From Basidiobolus meristosporus CBS 931.73 (taxonomy: Eukaryota; Fungi; Basidiobolomycota), in the NCBI GenBank assembly GCA_002104905.1, contig MCFE01000434.1, positions 11,714 through 75,713 on the forward strand: 64,000 bases of DNA, given 5' to 3'. Made by a program: the position numbers and the translations under genes. The notes beneath the pieces are model-generated. The model was not told the DNA's origin. It was given only the letters and a program-made list of their open reading frames with translations, and ran no database searches. This document shows, in pieces, positions 13,285-27,055 of the stretch; the stretch's first letter is position 1; each line of letters begins with the position of its first letter.

Positions 13285-13589
13285 GTTTTTGTAGTGTTGT
13301 GGAGCTCGAGTGAACCTAGCCAAGTCACGGTTTTGACACACTACCTGATGTTTGGAAATTTTTCATTTTTTTTTTGGGCTAACCAGCAAATTAGGAATTT
13401 CGTATAAACCCCCAGTTAAATTACCAACGTTACATGGAATCCGGTTTTACCAAGGATTCAGTGAGATACCCAATAGCTTCCACTCTTCCCTCCACATGCT
13501 GACTTGATGATAGAATATCGATTCTGATCTTGCAGTTGTTGAAGCTTAATGTGTTTTAGCGCTATAGTTTGTACAATGAAGAACAGGCT

Positions 13590-13600
13590 TCGAGGATTAC
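13590..13600 (+). promoter_or_regulatory. Degenerate copy of the PHO89 upstream motif (TCGAGGATTAC)
   Basis: Resembles TCGTGGTTAC with one substitution and one insertion, and ends 355 bp before the copy 1 ATG, the same spacing as in the other copies. Confidence 0.3.
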
Positions 13601-13954
13601 ACTGGATATTGCCTATTTCGAGCACAGTATCAAAACTGATGATGAGCAACTGTCATTTTAAATCATTCAACGATCAAAGTTGTGGATACCTTATTCAATG
13701 AATTCAGCAATAATGCCCAATAGAGCTACTGAGAGACACTGCGTGATCGGATGCGAAGCCCTGAGCTATGTGGCGAACTGAGAATGATTACACGAATTTG
13801 GTATACAGGTCGAGAGTTACATGGCAAAACCTGAAGCACGAGTGGAGAAAAAGAGCAAAACAGAGGGATATATAATGGGTGCAGTGAGGCAATCGACTCC
13901 CCAGGAAGATAATATCCTACATCACTAACTACATTACATTTCTAACCTCTAACG

Positions 13955-15475
13955 ATGCTAGTACACGATTTCACTTGGATATTCGTGGTGTGTATCATCT
14001 TCGCCTTCCTCGATGCCTACGGTATCGGTGCGAACGATGTCGCCAACTCATTCTCCACTTCCGTCTCCTCCAAATCTCTCACCCTTGGCCAGGCCTGTGC
14101 CATCGCCGTGTTCACCGAGTTCTTGGGTGCCTTCCTGATGGGCTCAGGAACAGCCGAGACAATCAAAGGAAAGATCATCTCCATCAAGAACTTCGAGAAC
14201 CAGCCCGAGCTACTCATGCTTGCCATGACATGCGCCCTAGTGGGTTCATCCACCTGGGTGCTGTTTGCCACAAGAAATGGATGGCCAGTGTCGACCACTC
14301 ATGCGATTGTCGGGGCAATCATCGGAGTAGGGATCGCAGCATTTGGTCCAAGCTCGGTTGACTGGAGTTACAACGGAGTGGCCAAGATCATCACCTCCTG
14401 GTTCATCTCCCCCGTGTGCGCAGGAATAGTGGCCAGCATCATCTACTTGGTCACCAAATATGGCGTGCTCAAACATGAGAACTCCTTCGAGCGTGGCCTC
14501 ATTGCCATCCCCTTGTACTTTGGATTCACCGCATTCATCAACGCCTTCTACATCATCTACAAAGGATCTCCAGGCCTTAACCTTGCCTCCGCCTCGCCAG
14601 GAGCTATTTGGGGATCCACCATTGGTATCACAGTTGCCGTGATGCTCTTCTGCTGGTTCTTCATTCGTCCTTGGTTGGTTCGCAAGCTCCAGAAGAAGGA
14701 GGATCTCCGCTGGTATCATGTCTTTGTCGTGCCTTTCCTCGGCCCCCGTCCTTCTGTGACCATTCACGGTGAGGAGGAGGGTAAGACTGAGAAAATGGAC
14801 CATGAGCTTACTCAGCAGGAGGAAACACCCCGCAATGGCATTTTCGAGCGTATCAAGGCTGTCGTGTTGCATGGCATCCGCAAGGATGTTGTCAACTGCA
14901 AGGGTGAAAGAATGCAGAAGATTCACGATGCCGCCATCAGATATGACGATGACACCGAGTACATGTACAGCTTCCTCCAGGTCATCACCGCCTCCATGGC
15001 CTCATTTGCCCATGGCTCGAACGATGTTGCCAATGCTGTTGGCCCACTCTCCACCGTGTACCATGTGTGGAGCACAGCCACTGTCGACATCAGTGGCAAG
15101 ACTCCAGTCCCGTTGTGGGTGTTGGCCATGGGAGGTGTAGCCATTGATCTTGGACTGATCACCTACGGCTACAACATCATGCGCACCCTCGGCAACAAGA
15201 TCACCTACCACTCACCCACTCGTGGATTCAGCATGGAGCTCGGCAGCTCGTTGACTGTGCTGACCGCCTCGAAGATCGGACTGCCAGTGTCCACCACGCA
15301 CTGCATCACCGGGGCCACCGCAGCAGTCGGACTGTGCAACGGAACAGCGAGCTCACTCAACTGGAGAATCATCGCATGGTGCTTCTTGTCCTGGATCTTG
15401 ACTCTTCCGTTTGCTGGAGTTGTTGCTGGACTTTTGTTCTCATTTGCCGCGTATGCTCCAAAACTTACCCTCTAA
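13955..15475 (+). CDS. PHO89: PiT-family Na+/phosphate symporter (Pho89/Pho-4), copy 1, 506 aa
   Basis: Both PiT signatures are present (GANDVAN, HGSNDVAN), plus PVSTTH twice and many hydrophobic helices. TATATAA at 13869. Confidence 0.96.
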   Translation: MLVHDFTWIFVVCIIFAFLDAYGIGANDVANSFSTSVSSKSLTLGQACAIAVFTEFLGAFLMGSGTAETIKGKIISIKNFENQPELLMLAMTCALVGSSTWVLFATRNGWPVSTTHAIVGAIIGVGIAAFGPSSVDWSYNGVAKIITSWFISPVCAGIVASIIYLVTKYGVLKHENSFERGLIAIPLYFGFTAFINAFYIIYKGSPGLNLASASPGAIWGSTIGITVAVMLFCWFFIRPWLVRKLQKKEDLRWYHVFVVPFLGPRPSVTIHGEEEGKTEKMDHELTQQEETPRNGIFERIKAVVLHGIRKDVVNCKGERMQKIHDAAIRYDDDTEYMYSFLQVITASMASFAHGSNDVANAVGPLSTVYHVWSTATVDISGKTPVPLWVLAMGGVAIDLGLITYGYNIMRTLGNKITYHSPTRGFSMELGSSLTVLTASKIGLPVSTTHCITGATAAVGLCNGTASSLNWRIIAWCFLSWILTLPFAGVVAGLLFSFAAYAPKLTL

Positions 15476-15860
15476 ATATCCAGTCCATTAATATTGACTA
15501 TTACACATATACATAACATACGACATAACATAAGAAGCTGTACAGGAATAAAATGTTTATACTTGATATGTGAAGGTAGTAATCGAACTAATGAAAAATC
15601 TCGCAAACTGAAGTTGGTGCCCAATCCAGACGACAAATGATTAGTTGGGATGATTCCGCTTTCACCAGTTTAGTATGTGTATCCTGCGTACTATTGGAAA
15701 TGATATCCAATGTCAGTATTTTTGATGAATTTGCTCGGGGGAGTTCTTGCACAACCTTTGACTCATCGAATAGTTCATCTAAATAAGGTTTGTGAAACCA
15801 GCGCTTATCTCATATAAAGTTTGGTAAGAATTTTTACCAATTACCTGCCCGTAGGGAGAC

Positions 15861-15870
15861 TCGTGGTTAC
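15861..15870 (+). promoter_or_regulatory. Conserved upstream motif TCGTGGTTAC (PHO89 copy 2)
   Basis: Exact match, ending 356 bp before ATG 16226. Confidence 0.65.
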
Positions 15871-16225
15871 AATCGGGTTCTTGCTTACAGCATCTATAAG
15901 GATACAACTCGGGAAACATTTACTGCGAAATTTCATGTGAATCTTATATTGCATACACGTAAACTGCGTAACCCCAGCACGACCAATGAAGCTTCTGGAT
16001 TGCTTGATGTGCCCTTAAACGAAGGCTTATTTCAGCGAAAGGAGTCACAGCGCCTGAATTGGACTAGCAAGTTAAAAAACTGGGTTAGCTCCAACTTCTT
16101 ATCCAAATAAGTAAAATGCCTCAACAAAGTGTTTCCACTGAGATGCGTACTGGATTCATATAAAGTTTACCCAGCTGTTCATTCACCATCACTTGTTCAA
16201 GTGGCTCTCTCCTAAATATTTTGAC

Positions 16226-17747
16226 ATGCTTGTACATGACTTCACTTGGATATTCGTGGTGTGCATCATCTTCGCCTTCCTCGATGCCTACGGTATCGGT
16301 GCGAACGATGTTGCCAACTCGTTCTCCACCTCCGTCTCCTCCAAATCTCTCACCCTTGGCCAGGCCTGTGCCATTGCCGTGTTCACCGAGTTCTTGGGCG
16401 CCTTCCTGATGGGCTCAGGAACAGCCGAGACAATCAAAGGAAAGATCATCTCCATCAAGAACTTCGAGAACCAGCCCGAGCTACTAATGCTTGCCATGAC
16501 ATGCGCCCTAGTGGGTTCATCCACCTGGGTGCTGTTTGCCACAAGAAATGGATGGCCAGTGTCGACCACTCACGCGATTGTCGGGGCAATCATCGGAGTA
16601 GGGATCGCAGCATTCGGGCCAAACTCGGTTGACTGGAGCTACAACGGAGTGGCCAAGATCATCACCTCCTGGTTCATCTCCCCCGTGTGCGCAGGAATAG
16701 TGGCCAGCATCATCTACTTGGTCACAAAATATGGCGTGCTCAAACATGAGAACTCTTTCGAGCGTGGCCTCATTGCCATCCCCTTGTACTTTGGATTCAC
16801 CGCATTTCATCAACGCCTTCTACATCATCTACAAAGGATCTCCAGGCCTTAACCTTGCCTCCGCCTCACCAGGAGCCATTTGGGGATCCACCATTGGTAT
16901 CACAGTTGCCGTGATGCTCTTCTGCTGGTTCTTCATTCGTCCTTGGTTGGTTCGCAAGCTCCAGAAGAAGGAGGATCTCCGCTGGTATCATGTCTTTGTC
17001 GTGCCTTTCCTCGGCCCCCGTCCTTCTGTGACCATTCACAGTGAGGAGGAGGGTAAGACTGAGAAAATGGACCACGAGCTTACTCAGCAGGAGGAAACAC
17101 CCCGCAATGGCATTTTCGAGCGTATCAAGGCTGTCGTGTTGCATGGCATCCGCAAGGATGTTGTCAACTGCAAGGGTGAAAGAATGCAGAAGATTCACGA
17201 TGCCGCCATCAGATATGACGATGACACCGAGTACATGTACAGCTTCCTCCAGGTCATCACCGCCTCCATGGCCTCATTTGCCCATGGCTCGAACGATGTT
17301 GCCAATGCTGTTGGCCCACTCTCCACCGTGTACCATGTGTGGAGCACAGCCACTGTCGACATCAGTGGCAAGACCCCAGTCCCGTTGTGGGTGTTGGCCA
17401 TGGGAGGTGTAGCCATTGATCTTGGGCTGATCACCTACGGCTACAACATCATGCGCACCCTCGGCAACAAGATCACCTACCACTCACCCACCCGTGGATT
17501 CAGCATGGAGCTCGGCAGCTCGTTGACTGTGCTGACCGCCTCAAAGATTGGACTGCCAGTGTCCACCACGCACTGCATCACCGGGGCCACCGCAGCAGTC
17601 GGACTGTGCAACGGAACAGCGAGCTCACTCAACTGGAGAATCATCGCATGGTGCTTCTTGTCCTGGATCTTGACTCTTCCATTTGCTGGAGTTGTTGCTG
17701 GACTGTTGTTCTCATTTGCCGCGTATGCCCCCAAATTTACCCTTTAA
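16226..17747 (+). pseudogene. PHO89: PHO89 copy 2 with one +1 frameshift (pseudogene or sequencing error)
   Basis: Spans 1522 bp against 1521 in intact copies. There is an extra T at 16805-16807 (GCATTTCATC vs GCATTCATC); otherwise the copy is intact. TATAAA at 16159. Confidence 0.85.
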
Positions 17748-18336
17748 ATTTAAATTCACGACCTAGCTTGAAAGATTTGTACAGTAATAAAATTGTGTTT
17801 ACCGAAGAAATTGCAACATACATCATTCATATATCCTGAATGCGTGGTTGAGATTTACAATTCAGTTGGTTGTAGGATCGGTTGCATTGTGACTCAATGG
17901 TCCATTAGGGTGGAAGACAATGGGAATATTTAATAACTTTGCGGTACAAATGGTGATTGTAGTGTTCTTGAATTTTCCGGTAAATATAGGATAAATATTT
18001 TGCTGTATACGGATTCGAGCAGGTGTGTAGAATTGCCAATTTGCATGCTCACTATATGCTTTCCATGATGCTTTCGTAAAGCGTACTCCATTGGGTATTT
18101 CAATGTCTACGGGATGCCGGCTAAATAGCCACGATTCTGACACAATGGAAAATCAGGAGGCAGTTTCATGATGGTCTTCTTTGGCAACTCAAGATCAATT
18201 TCCAGCAGTTGAATCGGTTGGTGAGTAGTCAGTGGTTAGTAGGGAAATCCAAGTCAGATTTCACTGCCTCTGATTTACGCTTGTGTGAGATAGACTTTTG
18301 ACGATGCAACCACCAATCAGCTATCACCAAGGCATC

Positions 18337-18346
18337 TCGTGGTTAC
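18337..18346 (+). promoter_or_regulatory. Conserved upstream motif TCGTGGTTAC (PHO89 copy 3)
   Basis: Exact match, ending 370 bp before ATG 18716. Confidence 0.65.
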
Positions 18347-18715
18347 ATTCACGATCAATAAAAAGCACGCTGATTCAGAAATCTAGTAGACATGAGATAT
18401 ACCGATTACTTGAGTAATTTTTTAAGATGACTGGATCTACAACTGAAGACCACTCCCCCGATATTTCGTCTGGAGTAACCTCACAGTGGCCAATCGATTC
18501 TTTGATGCCAGTTGCATGCGTCTAAGCGAATTTTTATTCCAGAAACTAACGTTGCACCATTCGGCCAGACATGGCAACTAGAGCATCAACGACTGTAAGA
18601 AGTAAATTGTCCATGAACAATAGGAATGTTCCATTCAGATTTCATCTCATAGCACTGAATATAAAAGAAATTTGTTGGATTCTCTGTTGGTCAACTAAAA
18701 ATCTACTTTAACTCA

Positions 18716-20236
18716 ATGCTAGTACACGATTTCACTTGGATATTCGTGGTGTGTATCATCTTTGCCTTCCTCGATGCCTACGGTATCGGTGCGAACGATG
18801 TCGCCAACTCATTCTCCACCTCCGTCTCCTCAAAATCTCTGACCCTTGGCCAGGCCTGTGTCATTGCCGTGTTCACCGAGTTCTTGGGTGCCTTCCTGAT
18901 GGGCTCAGGAACAGCCGAGACAATCAAAGGAAAGATCATCTCCATCAAGAACTTCGAGAACCAGCCCGAGCTACTCATGCTTGCCATGACATGCGCTCTA
19001 GTGGGTTCATCCACCTGGGTGCTGTTTGCCACAAGAAATGGATGGCCAGTGTCGACCACTCACGCGATTGTCGGGGCAATCATCGGAGTAGGGATCGCAG
19101 CATTCGGGCCAAACTCGGTTGACTGGAGCTACAACGGAGTGGCCAAGATCATCACCTCCTGGTTCATCTCCCCCGTGTGCGCAGGAATAGTGGCCAGTAT
19201 CATTTACCTGGTCACCAAACATGGTGTGCTGAAGCACAAGAACTCCTTTGAGCGTGGCCTCATTGCCATCCCCTTGTACTTTGGATTCACCGCATTCATC
19301 AACGCCTTCTACATCATCTACAAAGGATCTCCGGGCCTCAACCTTGCCTCCGCCTCGCCAGGAGCCATTTGGGGATCCACCGTTGGCATCACAGTTGCCG
19401 TGATGTTCTTCTGCTGGTTCTTCATTCGTCCTTGGTTGGTTCGCAAGCTCCAGAAGAAGGAGGATCTCCGCTGGTATCATGTCTTTGTCGTGCCTTTCCT
19501 CGGCCCCCGTCCTTCTGTGACCATTCACAGTGAAGAGGAAGGCAAGGCTGAGAAGGGTGAGCACCAGATTGCTGAAGAAGGTGACGCTGCCCCCGCTGGT
19601 GTCTTCGAGCGCATCAAGGCTGTCGTGTTACACGGTGTCCGCAAGGATGTTGTCAACTGCAAAGGCGAGAGAATGCAGAAGATCCACGATGCCGCCATCA
19701 GATATGACGATGACACCGAGTACATGTACAGCTTCCTCCAGGTCATCACTGCCTCCATGGCCTCATTTGCCCATGGCTCGAACGATGTTGCCAATGCTGT
19801 TGGCCCACTCTCCACCGTGTACCATGTGTGGAGCACAGCCACTGTCGACATCAGTGGCAAGACTCCAGTCCCGTTGTGGGTGTTGGCCATGGGAGGTGTA
19901 GCCATTGATCTTGGACTGATCACCTACGGCTACAACATCATGCGCACCCTCGGCAACAAGATCACCTACCACTCACCCACTCGTGGATTCAGCATGGAGC
20001 TCGGCAGTTCGTTGACTGTGCTGACCGCCTCGAAGATCGGACTGCCAGTGTCCACCACGCACTGCATCACCGGGGCCACCGCAGCAGTCGGACTGTGCAA
20101 CGGAACAGCGAGCTCACTCAACTGGAGAATCATCGCATGGTGCTTCTTGTCCTGGATCTTGACTCTTCCATTTGCTGGAGTTGTTGCTGGACTTCTGTTC
20201 TCATTTGCCGCGTATGCCCCTAAATTGACTCTCTAA
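18716..20236 (+). CDS. PHO89: PiT-family Na+/phosphate symporter, copy 3, 506 aa
   Basis: Intact ORF with PiT signatures. TATAAA at 18660. Confidence 0.96.
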   Translation: MLVHDFTWIFVVCIIFAFLDAYGIGANDVANSFSTSVSSKSLTLGQACVIAVFTEFLGAFLMGSGTAETIKGKIISIKNFENQPELLMLAMTCALVGSSTWVLFATRNGWPVSTTHAIVGAIIGVGIAAFGPNSVDWSYNGVAKIITSWFISPVCAGIVASIIYLVTKHGVLKHKNSFERGLIAIPLYFGFTAFINAFYIIYKGSPGLNLASASPGAIWGSTVGITVAVMFFCWFFIRPWLVRKLQKKEDLRWYHVFVVPFLGPRPSVTIHSEEEGKAEKGEHQIAEEGDAAPAGVFERIKAVVLHGVRKDVVNCKGERMQKIHDAAIRYDDDTEYMYSFLQVITASMASFAHGSNDVANAVGPLSTVYHVWSTATVDISGKTPVPLWVLAMGGVAIDLGLITYGYNIMRTLGNKITYHSPTRGFSMELGSSLTVLTASKIGLPVSTTHCITGATAAVGLCNGTASSLNWRIIAWCFLSWILTLPFAGVVAGLLFSFAAYAPKLTL

Positions 20237-20642
20237 AATTAATACTATCACTATAATTTAAATCGCATTTCACTACAATATACATATATCTTGCTGTATA
20301 GAAATAAATTGGCCTAACTTTCAAAACCAATGTACAAATGAAAGAATTTAAATACGTCTTCTGTTTCATCACTCCATCTGTCAACAAACTGCAAAGCCAT
20401 ATTGGTATGTTGGCGTTACTAGGCCACCATATTTCTTGGTCAGTGACTGCAAAATCTTTGCTTGGAAGTAACACAAAGTATATGCTGCGCACTGTTCCAC
20501 TAGCAGTCTATTTGGGAAATATGTTCGGTGTGAGTAATGTACCACATATTCCAGATAAACGATTTTCTTGAAATCAGTGTAACCAGAGCTTAGTGCCCAT
20601 TAGCAACTGCACATGTAACCAATAAATGATCAACAATGTTGC

Positions 20643-20652
20643 TCGTGGTTAC
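20643..20652 (+). promoter_or_regulatory. Conserved upstream motif TCGTGGTTAC (PHO89 copy 4)
   Basis: Exact match, ending 356 bp before ATG 21008. Confidence 0.65.
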
Positions 20653-21007
20653 CATCTTGTTTTCATACGGAATAGATGAGAATACCTACTTGTATGCATC
20701 TGGTAAATAGCTTGTGAGCCCTTTTGTCCATCTATTCCGATGGAGGTAACTATAACGTGCCCAATGGATTTCAGGAAGAGCATTTCATGGTGTACACTTT
20801 TGGCTTATTCCCGAGGTCTGGAGACACAATCTTTACATAGGCCCAAATGGTGAGAACCTTGGCATGGGACAGGTTATCCATTGAAATAGTAAAATATGTG
20901 GTAGAGGGCAGATACCATCACCAGAACGACCATATTTGTATAAAAATCAGCAGGAGCACCCACTACTCATCGCTTTGAAAAGTGAAACCCTCTAAATCTC
21001 ATTCATT

Positions 21008-22528
21008 ATGCTGGTCCACGATTTCACTTGGATATTCGTGGTGTGTATCATCTTCGCCTTCCTCGATGCCTACGGTATCGGTGCGAACGATGTCGCCAAC
21101 TCATTCTCCACCTCCGTCTCCTCAAAATCTCTGACCCTTGGCCAGGCCTGTGTCATCGCCGTGTTCACCGAGTTCTTGGGTGCCTTCCTGATGGGCTCAG
21201 GAACAGCCGAGACAATCAAAGGAAAGATCATCTCCATCAAGAACTTCGAGAACCAGCCCGAGCTACTCATGCTTGCCATGACATGCGCCCTAGTGGGTTC
21301 ATCCACCTGGGTGCTGTTTGCCACAAAGAATGGATGGCCAGTGTCGACCACTCACGCGATTGTCGGGGCAATCATCGGAGTAGGGATCGCAGCATTCGGG
21401 CCTAACTCGGTTGACTGGAGCTACAACGGAGTGGCCAAGATCATCACCTCTTGGTTCATCTCCCCCGTGTGCGCAGGAATAGTGGCCAGTATCATTTACC
21501 TGGTCACCAAACATGGTGTGCTGAAGCACAAGAACTCCTTTGAGCGTGGCCTCATTGCCATCCCCTTGTACTTTGGATTCACCGCATTCATCAACGCCTT
21601 CTACATCATCTACAAAGGATCTCCAGGCCTTAACCTTGCCTCCGCCTCACCAGGAGCCATTTGGGGATCCACCGTTGGCATCACAGTTGCCGTGATGCTC
21701 TTCTGCTGGTTCTTCATTCGTCCTTGGTTGGTTCGCAAGCTCCAGAAGAAGGAGGATCTCCGCTGGTATCATGTCTTTGTCATTCCTTTCCTCGGCCCCC
21801 GTCCTTCTGTGACCATTCACAGTGAAGAGGAAGGCAAGGCTGAGAAGGGTGCGCATGAGATTGCTGAAGAAGGTGACGCTGCCCCCACTGGTGTCTTCGA
21901 GCGCATCAAGGCTGTCGTGTTGCACGGTGTCCGCAAGGATGTTGTCAACTGCAAAGGCGAGAGAATGCAGAAGATCCACGATGCCGCCATCAGATATGAC
22001 GATGACACCGAGTACATGTACAGCTTCCTCCAGGTCATCACTGCCTCCATGGCCTCATTTGCCCATGGCTCGAACGATGTTGCCAATGCTGTTGGCCCAC
22101 TCTCCACCGTGTACCATGTGTGGAGCACAGCCACTGTCGACATCAGTGGCAAGACTCCAGTCCCGTTGTGGGTGCTGGCCATGGGAGGTGTAGCCATTGA
22201 TCTTGGACTGATCACCTATGGCTACAACATCATGCGCACCCTCGGCAACAAGATCACCTACCACTCACCCACCCGTGGATTTAGCATGGAGCTCGGCAGC
22301 TCGTTGACTGTGCTGACCGCCTCGAAGATCGGACTGCCAGTGTCCACCACGCACTGCATCACCGGGGCCACCGCAGCAGTCGGGCTGTGCAACGGAACAG
22401 CGAGCTCACTCAACTGGAGAATCATCGCATGGTGCTTCTTGTCCTGGATCCTGACCCTTCCGTTTGCTGGGCTCGTTGCTGGACTTTTGTTCTCATTTGC
22501 TGCATATGCTCCCAAACTCACTCTTTAA
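21008..22528 (+). CDS. PHO89: PiT-family Na+/phosphate symporter, copy 4, 506 aa
   Basis: Intact ORF with PiT signatures. TATAAA at 20939. Confidence 0.96.
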   Translation: MLVHDFTWIFVVCIIFAFLDAYGIGANDVANSFSTSVSSKSLTLGQACVIAVFTEFLGAFLMGSGTAETIKGKIISIKNFENQPELLMLAMTCALVGSSTWVLFATKNGWPVSTTHAIVGAIIGVGIAAFGPNSVDWSYNGVAKIITSWFISPVCAGIVASIIYLVTKHGVLKHKNSFERGLIAIPLYFGFTAFINAFYIIYKGSPGLNLASASPGAIWGSTVGITVAVMLFCWFFIRPWLVRKLQKKEDLRWYHVFVIPFLGPRPSVTIHSEEEGKAEKGAHEIAEEGDAAPTGVFERIKAVVLHGVRKDVVNCKGERMQKIHDAAIRYDDDTEYMYSFLQVITASMASFAHGSNDVANAVGPLSTVYHVWSTATVDISGKTPVPLWVLAMGGVAIDLGLITYGYNIMRTLGNKITYHSPTRGFSMELGSSLTVLTASKIGLPVSTTHCITGATAAVGLCNGTASSLNWRIIAWCFLSWILTLPFAGLVAGLLFSFAAYAPKLTL

Positions 22529-22925
22529 TATCGTTGCTCCCCCTCGTTAAATCTCAAACTCACCGTAACATGCGTCTCTCTACCTCCATAGAAATAAAAA
22601 TTACAAAATTTTGATATCATAATAATTTGCTTTCGGGCCCATTGTACGTCTAGACAATTTATGGAGCTATGATGTTATTCACTTGCTCGCATTATGCTAA
22701 AGTATGATTAATGCCTCTACGGTCATCTTGTCAAATCCCGAAATTGAGTAGTACCTGGAATCGTTGTTCGCACATTGTGCTGCTCATCTTCCATTCAGAA
22801 AATACCTTTAGTGCGGATTGGATTTCACCAACCCCGAAACTACAATTTTCTTAAAATCAGTGTAACCAAAGCTTAGTGCCCATTAGCTACTGCACATGTA
22901 ACCAATAAATGATCAACAATGTTGC

Positions 22926-22935
22926 TCGTGGTTAC
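22926..22935 (+). promoter_or_regulatory. Conserved upstream motif TCGTGGTTAC (PHO89 copy 5)
   Basis: Exact match, ending 351 bp before ATG 23286. Not independent of copy 4, because the surrounding spacer is duplicated. Confidence 0.6.
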
Positions 22936-23285
22936 CATCTTGTTTTCATACGGAATAGATGAGAATGTCCATGTAATTGGTAAACAATGTATAGCCCTCC
23001 TGCCCATCTATTTCAATGAAGGTAACCATCACGCGCCCAATGGGTTCCATGAGGAGCATTTCATGGTGTAAGCACTTTGGCCTATTCCTGAGGTTTGGAG
23101 ACACAACCTCCGAACTCGCCCAACTGGTGAAAACCTTAGCTCATAACAGGTTCAATGGCAGAAATAGTAAGTTATAAAGTATAGAGAAAATGCCATAATC
23201 AGAACGACCACATCCGTATAAAAGTCAGCAGGAACACCCACTACTCATCGCTTTGAAAAGTGAAACCCTCTAAATCCCATTCATT

Positions 23286-24806
23286 ATGCTGGTCCACGAT
23301 TTCACTTGGATATTCGTGGTGTGTATCATCTTCGCCTTTCTTGATGCCTACGGTATCGGTGCGAACGATGTTGCCAACTCATTCTCCACTTCCGTCTCCT
23401 CCAAATCTCTGACCCTTGGCCAGGCCTGTGTCATCGCCGTGTTCACCGAGTTCTTGGGTGCCTTCCTGATGGGCTCAGGAACAGCCGAGACAATCAAAGG
23501 AAAGATCATCTCCATCAAGAACTTCGAGAACCAGCCCGAGCTACTCATGCTTGCCATGACATGCGCCCTAGTGGGTTCATCCACCTGGGTGCTGTTTGCC
23601 ACAAGAAATGGATGGCCAGTGTCGACCACTCACGCGATTGTCGGGGCAATCATCGGAGTAGGGATCGCAGCATTCGGGCCTAACTCGGTTGACTGGAGCT
23701 ACAACGGAGTGGCCAAGATCATCACCTCCTGGTTCATCTCCCCCGTGTGCGCAGGAATAGTGGCCAGTATCATTTACCTGGTCACCAAACATGGTGTGCT
23801 GAAGCACAAGAACTCCTTTGAGCGTGGCCTCATTGCCATCCCCTTGTACTTTGGATTCACCGCATTCATCAACGCCTTCTACATCATCTACAAAGGATCT
23901 CCAGGCCTCAACCTTGCCTCCGCCTCACCAGGAGCCATTTGGGGATCCACCGTTGGCATCACAGTTGCCGTGATGCTCTTCTGCTGGTTCTTCATTCGTC
24001 CTTGGTTGGTTCGCAAGCTCCAGAAGAAGGAGGATCTCCGCTGGTATCATGTCTTTGTCATTCCTTTCCTCGGCCCCCGTCCTTCTGTGACCATTCACAG
24101 TGAAGAGGAAGGCAAGGCTGAGAAGGGTGAGCATGAGATTGCTGAAGAAGGTGACGCTGCCCCCACTGGTGTCTTCGAGCGCATCAAGGCTGTCGTGTTA
24201 CACGGTGTCCGCAAGGATGTTGTCAACTGCAAAGGCGAGAGAATGCAGAAGATCCACGATGCCGCCATCAGATATGACGATGACACCGAGTACATGTACA
24301 GCTTCCTCCAGGTCATCACTGCCTCCATGGCCTCATTTGCCCATGGCTCGAACGATGTTGCCAATGCTGTTGGCCCACTCTCCACCGTGTACCATGTGTG
24401 GAGCACAGCCACTGTCGACATCAGTGGCAAGACTCCAGTCCCGTTGTGGGTGTTGGCCATGGGAGGTGTTGCCATTGATCTTGGACTGATCACCTATGGC
24501 TACAACATCATGCGCACCCTCGGCAACAAGATCACCTACCACTCACCCACTCGTGGATTCAGCATGGAGCTCGGCAGCTCGTTGACTGTGCTGACCGCCT
24601 CGAAGATCGGACTGCCAGTGTCCACCACGCACTGCATCACCGGGGCCACCGCAGCAGTCGGACTGTGCAACGGAACAGCGAGCTCACTCAACTGGAGAAT
24701 CATCGCATGGTGCTTCTTGTCCTGGATCTTGACTCTTCCGTTTGCTGGAGTTGTTGCTGGACTTTTGTTCTCATTTGCAGCATATGCCCCTAAATTCACC
24801 CTTTAG
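23286..24806 (+). CDS. PHO89: PiT-family Na+/phosphate symporter, copy 5, 506 aa
   Basis: Intact ORF with PiT signatures. TATAAA at 23217. Confidence 0.96.
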   Translation: MLVHDFTWIFVVCIIFAFLDAYGIGANDVANSFSTSVSSKSLTLGQACVIAVFTEFLGAFLMGSGTAETIKGKIISIKNFENQPELLMLAMTCALVGSSTWVLFATRNGWPVSTTHAIVGAIIGVGIAAFGPNSVDWSYNGVAKIITSWFISPVCAGIVASIIYLVTKHGVLKHKNSFERGLIAIPLYFGFTAFINAFYIIYKGSPGLNLASASPGAIWGSTVGITVAVMLFCWFFIRPWLVRKLQKKEDLRWYHVFVIPFLGPRPSVTIHSEEEGKAEKGEHEIAEEGDAAPTGVFERIKAVVLHGVRKDVVNCKGERMQKIHDAAIRYDDDTEYMYSFLQVITASMASFAHGSNDVANAVGPLSTVYHVWSTATVDISGKTPVPLWVLAMGGVAIDLGLITYGYNIMRTLGNKITYHSPTRGFSMELGSSLTVLTASKIGLPVSTTHCITGATAAVGLCNGTASSLNWRIIAWCFLSWILTLPFAGVVAGLLFSFAAYAPKFTL

Positions 24807-25152
24807 TAGTCCAACTCCTTAGCTAGCTCAATATAATACAGCAGTATACGTACCTGCACTCTAGCCCAACCTAATGAAAGACTTGCCACAGCATCTAGGT
24901 TCGAAGAACTTAAAAGATTTTAATAAAGCAGATTCGTCAATAATAATGATCATTTCGATATTCCAGCCAAATGTTGATCGCGAGTATGGAATTAGACCTA
25001 CGACCAGTAAAAATCAAGAAACTTTGCGAGTTTCACTTACAAACCATATTAAGGATAGGATTGATGGGTAATAGCAGCAATGGCAAGTGCAACAAAAACT
25101 TCGCTTAGATTAACTCCAAAAAATGCAACCAATTATTAGGCATCAACCACAC

Positions 25153-25162
25153 CCGTGGTTAC
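25153..25162 (+). promoter_or_regulatory. Conserved upstream motif CCGTGGTTAC (PHO89 copy 6)
   Basis: The 9-mer core is exact and ends 373 bp before ATG 25535. Confidence 0.62.
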
Positions 25163-25534
25163 AATTTCATCAGACTCGTGAATATTCATAAAGCGACCGG
25201 GATTTATTCATGTTGATCGGAAAGATATAGATCCTAGAATGCAGTCAGCTTCTGGGAGGAATTCCAATGGAGTAACTAGCAAATAACCAATGGATTTCGT
25301 GAGGCGCCTTTCGTGATGCTAAGCCTGAGCTTGCTCCAAAGATATGGGATTCCAATTTCGATTTTGGACTAGTCAGTTGGATATCTCATGTTCGACACAA
25401 ACTTTATATCCAAAACAGGTTCTCGCATAGCACAAAATAAACCTTAAGCAGGATGGCTCTTTTCATATAAATACCAGTCGGGATAGCCACTACCTATCAC
25501 TTAGAAAAGTGAATCAATCTAGAGCTTCCTCATT

Positions 25535-27055
25535 ATGCTAGTCCACGACTTCACTTGGATATTCGTGGTGTGTATCATCTTCGCCTTTCTTGATGCCTAC
25601 GGTATCGGTGCGAACGATGTTGCCAACTCGTTCTCCACCTCCGTCTCCTCAAAATCTCTCACCCTTGGCCAGGCCTGCGCCATCGCCGTGTTCACCGAGT
25701 TCTTGGGCGCCTTCCTGATGGGCTCAGGAACAGCCGAGACAATCAAAGGAAAGATCATCTCCATTAAGAACTTCGAGAACCAGCCCGAGCTACTCATGCT
25801 TGCCATGACATGCGCCCTAGTGGGTTCATCCACCTGGGTGCTGTTTGCCACAAAGAATGGATGGCCAGTGTCGACCACTCACGCGATTGTCGGGGCAATC
25901 ATCGGAGTAGGGATCGCAGCATTCGGGCCAAGCTCGGTTGACTGGAGCTACAACGGAGTGGCCAAGATCATCACCTCCTGGTTCATCTCCCCCGTGTGTG
26001 CTGGTATAGTGGCCAGTACAATCTACTTGGTAACCAAGCATGGCGTGCTGAAGCACAAGAACTCCTTTGAGCGTGGCCTCATTGCCATCCCCTTGTACTT
26101 TGGATTCACCGCATTCATCAACGCCTTCTACATCATCTACAAAGGATCTCCAGGCCTTAACCTTGCCTCCGCCTCACCAGGAGCCATTTGGGGATCCACC
26201 GTTGGCATCACAGTTGCCGTGATGCTCTTCTGCTGGTTCTTCATTCGTCCTTGGTTGGTTCGCAAGCTCCAGAAGAAGGAGGATCTCCGCTGGTATCATG
26301 TCTTTGTCGTGCCTTTCCTCGGCCCCCGTCCAAGCATGACCATTCACAGTGAAGAGGAAGGGAAGGCTGAGAAGGGTGAGCATCAGATTGCTGAAGAAGG
26401 TGACGCTGCCCCCACTGGTGTCTTCGAGCGCATCAAGGCTGTCGTGTTACACGGTGTCCGCAAGGATGTTGTCAACTGCAAAGGCGAGAGAATGCAGAAG
26501 ATCCACGATGCCGCCATCAGATATGACGATGACACCGAGTACATGTACAGCTTCCTCCAGGTCATCACTGCCTCCATGGCCTCATTTGCCCATGGCTCGA
26601 ACGATGTTGCCAATGCTGTTGGCCCACTCTCCACCGTGTATCATGTGTGGAGCACTGGCACCGTCGACGTTAGTGGAAAGACACCAATTCCGTTGTGGGT
26701 GTTGGCCATGGGAGGTGTAGCCATTGATCTTGGACTGATCACCTATGGCTATCACATCATGCGCACCCTCGGCAACAAGATCACCTACCACTCACCCACT
26801 CGTGGATTCAGCATGGAGCTCGGCAGCTCGTTGACTGTGCTGACCGCCTCGAAGATCGGACTGCCAGTGTCCACCACGCACTGCATCACCGGGGCCACCG
26901 CAGCAGTCGGACTGTGCAACGGAACAGCGAGCTCACTCAACTGGAGAATCATCGCATGGTGCTTCTTGTCCTGGATCCTGACCCTTCCGTTTGCAGGAGT
27001 TGTTGCTGGGCTTTTATTCTCATTTGCTGCATATGCTCCTAAATTTGCCCTCTAA
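25535..27055 (+). CDS. PHO89: PiT-family Na+/phosphate symporter, copy 6, 506 aa
   Basis: Intact ORF with private substitutions (STGTVDVSGKTPIP, GYHIM). TATAAA at 25466. Confidence 0.96.
   Translation: MLVHDFTWIFVVCIIFAFLDAYGIGANDVANSFSTSVSSKSLTLGQACAIAVFTEFLGAFLMGSGTAETIKGKIISIKNFENQPELLMLAMTCALVGSSTWVLFATKNGWPVSTTHAIVGAIIGVGIAAFGPSSVDWSYNGVAKIITSWFISPVCAGIVASTIYLVTKHGVLKHKNSFERGLIAIPLYFGFTAFINAFYIIYKGSPGLNLASASPGAIWGSTVGITVAVMLFCWFFIRPWLVRKLQKKEDLRWYHVFVVPFLGPRPSMTIHSEEEGKAEKGEHQIAEEGDAAPTGVFERIKAVVLHGVRKDVVNCKGERMQKIHDAAIRYDDDTEYMYSFLQVITASMASFAHGSNDVANAVGPLSTVYHVWSTGTVDVSGKTPIPLWVLAMGGVAIDLGLITYGYHIMRTLGNKITYHSPTRGFSMELGSSLTVLTASKIGLPVSTTHCITGATAAVGLCNGTASSLNWRIIAWCFLSWILTLPFAGVVAGLLFSFAAYAPKFAL

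Follow-up and report, generated by a model that had tools for sequence, protein, structure and literature searches.

How do fungal phosphate transporter genes that have been multiplied in tandem come to be regulated, and does each copy carry the promoter of the founding gene? The question is raised by a 64,000-nucleotide stretch of contig MCFE01000434.1 of Basidiobolus meristosporus CBS 931.73 of assembly GCA_002104905.1 (referred to here as the window), which carries a tandem array of six PiT/PHO89-type phosphate transporter genes on the forward strand (13955..27055; open reading frames matching Pfam PHO4, PF01384, E ~1e-125). An earlier note had singled out one 9-mer, CGTGGTTAC, upstream of these genes as a candidate phosphate-response element. 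We find that this 9-mer is one half of a larger arrangement, module A, which is defined here as a ACCAATNA-type CCAAT box, 20 bp of intervening sequence (N20), and the word C-Y-CGTGGTT-M-C. It stands ahead of copies 2 to 6 and recurs in a sister species, Basidiobolus ranarum, whose public assembly is GCA_040143965.1. To judge from sequence, module A is probably, though by no means certainly, a composite regulatory element, placed upstream of the genes inside the array and maintained by purifying selection. For Zoopagomycota, knowledge of cis-regulation is close to nil.

The exact 9-mer occurs five times in the window when both strands are scanned, in each case on the forward strand (15862-15870, 18338-18346, 20644-20652, 22927-22935, and 25154-25162). 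Only 0.17 matches are expected, and none of 100 shuffled sequences reached five. Every site lies 350 to 372 bp ahead of the ATG of copies 2 to 6. The observation that had started the work, five 9-mers in the same orientation and none elsewhere in the window, is thus reproduced by the exact scan, and so are the distances given for them (356, 370, 356, 351, and 373, as ATG position minus 9-mer end). The sites themselves had been located correctly, with start coordinates one base early because the preceding Y had been included. When one mismatch is allowed, 11 matches are found in the window, 6 beyond the five exact sites, against ~7 expected in total, so there is no excess outside the array. A one-mismatch site in the 3' flank of copy 6 (28009) was rejected as a further module A; its surroundings are unrelated, and no CCAAT box stands at N20 from it.

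What weight such sites can bear depends on how the array has evolved. Among themselves, the array coding sequences (CDS) share 93 to 98% nucleotide identity, with four-fold sites at 87 to 94%, while the spacers between them are close to random relative to one another, with only ~48% mean column identity when aligned. Across 13955-27055, the pattern is one of concerted evolution, in which homogenization ends near the ATG and the stop codon and the spacers are saturated. The sequences therefore indicate that conversion has kept the CDS alike while the spacers are old, which makes footprinting among the paralogues legitimate. The spacers of copies 4 and 5 are the exception, a pair that is either young or recently converted. 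Identity between them is 93 to 100% from about -445 to -325, so module A of copy 5 is not independent of that of copy 4. Along the pair, identity is 93 to 100% over module A, 80 to 87% over a second module described below (module B), and 97 to 100% over the leader, with troughs of 60 to 70% between them, which is a typical promoter footprint pattern. The spacers ahead of copies 2, 3, 4 (standing for the 4/5 pair), and 6 were accordingly taken as the independent B. meristosporus set. Together with B. ranarum, they form the five-way set used below; "six spacers" refers to all five from B. meristosporus plus the one from B. ranarum.

Among the independent spacers 2, 3, 4, and 6, the 9-mer is the longest common word, and a shared 9-mer arose in only 1 of 2,000 dinucleotide-preserving shuffles. 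In all five B. meristosporus spacers, the ACCAATNA-type CCAAT box lies exactly 20 bp upstream of it. Module A of copy 2 reads ACCAATTA, N20, CTCGTGGTTAC (15837..15870, forward strand), and the CCAAT-N20-CGTGGTTAC arrangement recurs on the same strand at 18313..18346 (copy 3), 20619..20652 (copy 4), 22902..22935 (copy 5), and 25129..25162 (copy 6, where CC instead of CT stands in front of the core). Within the N20, four positions are invariant in the six spacers, namely, 2 (A), 8 (C), 12 (A), and 19 (C). A CA-N-CAA block at N20 positions 8 to 13 (N20 of copy 2, 15842-15861, and its equivalents) is nearly invariant and falls where the footprint of the CCAAT-binding complex should end; it may reflect a third contact or a requirement on DNA shape.

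Comparison with B. ranarum carries the case for selection. Contig JASJQH010007239.1 of that species (L001) is syntenic, with a kinase gene, a PX-domain gene, a Pho80-like cyclin gene, and an RPC31-like gene followed by PHO89. CDS nucleotide identity between the two species is 79 to 81%, and at four-fold sites the array and its B. ranarum orthologue are ~39% identical, that is, saturated. Even so, the B. ranarum spacer between copies 1 and 2 contains CCAAT-N20-CTCGTGGTTCC, then GTAAC-N9-CCAATGG, then TATAAAA. Apart from a 32-bp BLAST match over module A, this spacer is unalignable with any spacer of B. meristosporus. Outside module A, only 5.9% of the columns of the five-way alignment are invariant. 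Invariance extends over five or more consecutive columns only at CCAAT and CGTGGTT, for which the chance probabilities are roughly 4e-4 and 1e-6, respectively, and no other invariant run exceeds three columns. Position 8 of the 9-mer is A in B. meristosporus and C in B. ranarum, so the core kept without change is CGTGGTT and not the whole 9-mer. The base before CCAAT is A in all B. meristosporus copies and T in B. ranarum. Taken as sequence comparisons, these results are strong evidence of purifying selection on module A. The view that this is a paralogue footprint of a selected, orientation-fixed cis element, and neither chance nor leftover duplication homology, is thereby upheld through its retention in B. 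ranarum. The companion statement, that the spacers are otherwise unalignable, is weaker; the CCAAT box at N20, the four N20 bases, module B, and the TATA box and leader are conserved as well.

Module B lies 87 to 129 bp downstream of module A in B. meristosporus and consists of GTAAC-N10-CCAAT, mostly with CCAATGG. It is found on the forward strand at 15968..15987 (copy 2), 18475..18494 (copy 3), 20746..20765 (copy 4), 23022..23041 (copy 5), and 25272..25291 (copy 6), with CCAATGG in the last three. A TATAAA-type box follows at 16159..16165 ahead of copy 2, with equivalents at 18660, 20939, 23217, and 25466 ahead of copies 3 to 6, in each case 56 to 69 bp before the ATG. The hexamer GGTTAC/GTAACC is the most enriched of those present in all five independent spacers (10 observed versus 1.95 expected). 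Within the window, both composite patterns are limited to the five spacers, save for one extra match to GTAAC-N9/10-CCAAT. That match is a GTAAC-N9-CCAAT on the reverse strand in the 5' part of spacer 4 (20401-20419), where ~0.24 are expected per window.

Spacing is rigid inside the modules: module A keeps its N20, and module B has N10, or N9 in B. ranarum. Distances between features vary. The 9-mer is 87 to 129 bp from module B in B. meristosporus and 222 bp from it in B. ranarum; module B itself stands at -241 to -264 relative to the ATG in the former and at -170 in the latter. From the 9-mer to the TATA box, the distance is 282 to 314 bp in B. meristosporus versus 332 bp in B. ranarum. A spacing constraint relative to TATA, which had been part of the original proposal, therefore finds no support; the invariant spacing is the 20 bp to CCAAT. 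The 9-mer lies 350 to 372 bp from the downstream ATG (391 bp in B. ranarum) and 348 to 591 bp from the upstream stop codon, so that the position of module A follows the downstream ATG and not the upstream stop codon.

Copy 1 lacks this architecture. Its promoter, the intergenic region shared with a divergent RPC31-like gene (13286..13954, forward strand), is without modules A and B and has a TATATAA box at -86. The copy-1 promoter of B. ranarum likewise has neither module and has TATATAA at -85. Since the modules are missing from copy 1 of both species, two promoter types were present in the array before the species split. A degenerate version of the 9-mer had been reported ahead of copy 1. 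The sequence CGAGGATTA is indeed present at 13591-13599, with mismatches at 3 of 9 positions and no CCAAT box 20 bp upstream. We estimate that so weak a match would turn up within ~15 bp of the expected position with a chance of about 1 in 4, and we regard the site as a chance match; the copy-1 promoter of B. ranarum, too, is without the element. Seven other PiT paralogue promoters also lack it, namely, those of L002 (two genes), L003, L006, and L007 in B. meristosporus and of L004 and L005 in B. ranarum. No motif common to the array and the second PiT clade was found. Promoters of that clade in B. meristosporus (L002:3300-4000, L002:5707-6407, and L003:3300-4000) share an 11-mer, TTGACTAAATC, which is absent from the array.

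How could such a module work? We infer that it is bound by two proteins. The heterotrimeric CCAAT-binding complex (Hap2/3/5, the fungal NF-Y) would occupy the CCAAT box, and a second sequence-specific protein, probably monomeric, would read the nonpalindromic 9- to 11-bp word C-Y-CGTGGTT-M-C. The first base of the word lies 20 bp, or about two helical turns, downstream of CCAAT, a distance at which both proteins might bind or act jointly. The fungal complex covers ~13 nucleotides (nt) on the 3' side of CCAAT (PMC7144946), so a site starting at +21 would fall just outside it. About 100 bp nearer the gene, module B would reuse the same vocabulary in the form of a GTAAC/GTTAC core and a CCAAT box, with the TATA box next. 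Several points weigh against a selected composite element of this kind. The assignment of the CCAAT boxes to the CCAAT-binding complex is made from sequence and so remains putative. The fixed N20 is only suggestive as a sign of constraint; judging by the indels accumulated between modules A and B, we put at 10 to 40% the chance that an indel-free 20 bp would survive in five unconstrained lineages. Position 8 of the 9-mer has changed from A to C in B. ranarum. Finally, absence from copy 1 in both species and from the seven other PiT promoters means that the element is no general mark of phosphate transporter genes.

We compared module A with the regulatory elements that it might represent. The sequence agrees with the CCAAT box of Hap2/3/5: CCAAT is invariant in 6 of 6 spacers, and so is the A at +2. 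Fungal CCAAT boxes have flanks of the ACCAAYNA type. The known fungal phosphate-starvation cis elements are the Pho4/NUC-1 and Pho7 sites. The 9-mer is not the Pho4 site, as had been claimed. The Pho4/NUC-1 E-box motifs CACGTG and CACGTT are absent within 800 bp upstream of all six copies and from every spacer, and CACGTG is absent from the other PiT promoters examined. The Schizosaccharomyces pombe Pho7 consensus is TCG(G/C)(A/T)xxTTxAA (PMC5559640). A TCG triplet is found in 5 of 6 spacers here, and by eye the specified Pho7 positions fit 6 of 9 in copy 2, 5 of 9 in copies 3, 4/5, and 6, and 4 of 9 in B. ranarum. The match is therefore loose, as the earlier note had put it. Pho7 positions 4, 5, and 9 fail in all spacers, and the bases conserved here fall on positions that Pho7 leaves unspecified.

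The remaining candidates from fungi each share something with module A. Crz1 binds a calcineurin-dependent response element (CDRE), GNGGC(G/T)CA, with an in vivo core of (A/C)GCCNC, and at high pH Crz1 acts strongly on PHO89 of Saccharomyces cerevisiae (PMC4992276). The GTGGT core resembles GNGGC, and a 9-bp nonpalindromic word would suit a three-finger C2H2 protein; however, the invariant C of the Crz1 site is replaced by T (GTGGTT) in all six spacers, so the word is not a canonical CDRE. For the CCAAT-binding complex together with HapX, the site is CSAAT-N12-RWT plus a T(T/G)AN half-site 11 to 23 nt downstream, with promoter-specific conservation (PMC7144946). Module A is similar in having a putative partner site just past the ~13 nt covered by the complex and in its promoter-specific conservation. 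Unlike the HapX site, its N20 positions 13 to 15 read GGG, AGG, ATG, ACC, and AAT, so that RWT is present in only one of the five independent spacers (B. ranarum); TTAC begins 25 nt downstream, outside the 11- to 23-nt range; and the conserved word is 9 to 11 bp long versus a 4-bp half-site. PacC/Rim101 (GCCARG) was rejected, as only two scattered and nonconserved matches were found, in copy 1 at -636 and in copy 4 at -150 on the opposite strand.

Further resemblances were also considered. The endoplasmic reticulum stress response element (ERSE) is CCAAT-N9-CCACG, read by NF-Y and ATF6 (PMC7037772). As in module A, a CCAAT box is paired with a second short word at rigid spacing, and CGTGG is the reverse complement of CCACG. 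The two differ in that module A has N20 instead of N9, its second word is inverted and extended to CGTGGTT(A/C)C, it is located at phosphate transporter rather than chaperone genes, and it has no bZIP-like ACGT core. In plants, GT elements are read by trihelix factors and include Box II (GTGTGGTTAATATG), the GT-3 box GTTAC, and the GT-1 core GGTTAA (PMC4267404, PMC10873892). GTGGTTA reproduces seven bases of Box II, and GTTAC/GTAAC, the GT-3 core, recurs in modules A and B. GTTAC is present in 5 of 5 B. meristosporus sites, while the GGTTCC of B. ranarum breaks both GT cores and keeps CGTGGTT. In 6 of 6 spacers, CGTGGTT also fits the RUNX consensus, YGYGGTY. No GT-factor site is known in fungi, and fungi are not known to have Runt-domain proteins. 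Given the many known motifs, the Box II match is unremarkable, and the GT and RUNX resemblances can serve as leads only. A literature search for the 9-mer returned only primers and aptamers. Metagenome pattern scans gave 0 and then 9 matches, which we take to be chance matches because none is near a PiT gene. As far as sequence patterns go, then, module A matches none of the Pho4, Pho7, Crz1, PacC, HapX, and ERSE patterns, each of which fails in a defining feature.

If module A is a regulatory element, to what would it respond? A phosphate-starvation or alkaline-pH response element, read by a novel factor of the PHO pathway that replaces the Pho4 E-box logic, is possible but rather doubtful; it would be a special case of the selected composite element, not an alternative to selection. 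The element does stand upstream of PHO89-type genes, and yeasts switch such genes on when phosphate is low and when pH is high, with calcineurin/Crz1 as a major input (PMC4992276). CACGTG occurs in none of the ~13 PiT promoters examined, which makes a non-Pho4 logic plausible, and both species have a Pho80-like cyclin gene 2 kb from the array. The element is nevertheless missing from copy 1 of both species and from the seven PiT paralogue promoters, so the paralogues lend this reading no support. Naming phosphate limitation or alkaline pH as the signal would be a guess by analogy with the behavior of PHO89 homologues in other fungi. A bolder version, which we consider unlikely, is that module A serves a nutrient or stress pathway new to fungi. 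The CCAAT-binding complex would have a novel partner that reads CGTGGTT at a rigid distance of two turns, and the PHO89 copies that arose by amplification would, unlike the ancestral copy 1, receive a signal of their own. The candidate partners would be a trihelix or Myb-like protein or a multifinger protein retained in early-diverging fungi, and the arrangement would replace the Pho4 E-box logic of Dikarya.

It is less probable still that the element does not activate the downstream gene at all and is instead a control site or promoter for an upstream noncoding transcript by which the PHO89 promoter would be disturbed, or an intercopy boundary or terminator-linked element. Module A is found in intercopy spacers only and never ahead of copy 1, and several spacers have a weak A/T-rich block ~20 bp ahead of the CCAAT box. 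Fission yeast offers a precedent, as its phosphate genes are reportedly governed by tandem transcriptional interference, with long noncoding RNAs at the S. pombe PHO genes. Against such a role, the position of module A tracks the downstream ATG, and CCAAT boxes followed by a TATA box make up an ordinary promoter layout. That the conserved words are nonfunctional leftovers, through residual spacer homology or very short gene conversion tracts from the CDS, is strongly disfavored and very improbable: the spacers do descend from one ancestral unit, and conversion does operate in the array and probably spans the whole copy-4/copy-5 promoter, but conversion tracts are much longer than these islands of 5 to 11 bp, which sit in saturated sequence 350 bp away from the converted CDS, and in B. 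ranarum, where neutral sites are saturated, the islands recur with their order and N20 spacing unchanged (run-length chance, ~1e-6). The suggestion that the B. ranarum contig is a contaminant or a recent transfer from B. meristosporus is contradicted by the CDS identity given above.

Two further readings of module A were tried and rejected. In one frame, the AC[A/C] and [A/T]T[C/T] variation looks synonymous, as in a coding exon or an upstream open reading frame, but the stops differ, the frames are short, and none is conserved. For a noncoding RNA or a tRNA-derived element, there was no Rfam match at E values up to 1 and no tRNA, and the consensus fold (-0.58 kcal/mol) contained no covarying pair.

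The combination of converted CDS, saturated spacers, and a deeply diverged sister species amounts to a natural experiment that gives base-level promoter resolution from DNA letters alone. CCAAT-N20-CGTGGTT is a short, testable composite with which a new partner of the CCAAT-binding complex might be identified, and the amplified transporter copies appear to run on a promoter unlike that of the founding copy. Put modestly, the claim adds one more conserved promoter motif.

The six genes of the array are all on the forward strand. Their CDS occupy 13955-15475 (copy 1), 16226-17747 (copy 2), 18716-20236 (copy 3), 21008-22528 (copy 4), 23286-24806 (copy 5), and 25535-27055 (copy 6), each beginning with an ATG at its first position. 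The array proteins match B. meristosporus CBS 931.73 entries at 99% identity. Copy 2 is frameshifted by an extra T near 16805 (TTT versus TT in copy 3); either this is an assembly error, or copy 2 became a pseudogene very recently. Both promoter modules ahead of it are intact. In the public annotation, the array (window 16226-27052) is represented by two chimeric proteins of 576 to 585 amino acids. In model P0001, the first 335 residues come from copy 5 and the last 218 from copy 6; model P0003 begins as copy 2 and ends as copy 4. Both run from the front part of one copy into the back part of a later one, so the six-gene array is hidden in the annotation.

Upstream of the array by ~2 kb is the Pho80-like cyclin gene (PF08613; 11185-11984, reverse strand), whose synteny is kept in B. 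ranarum (L001:6505-7441). The B. ranarum contig stops 129 bp into the second tandem PHO89 copy (L001:12473-12601), and the array is therefore probably collapsed or broken in that assembly. A protein search with fragments for further B. ranarum array copies returned only fragments of the other clade and a degraded B. meristosporus PiT paralogue (L006:5241-6493, contig MCFE01000499.1). This paralogue has ~70% nucleotide identity, is annotated as two short gene models, has no module A, and adjoins DM9 and KilA-N/ankyrin genes.

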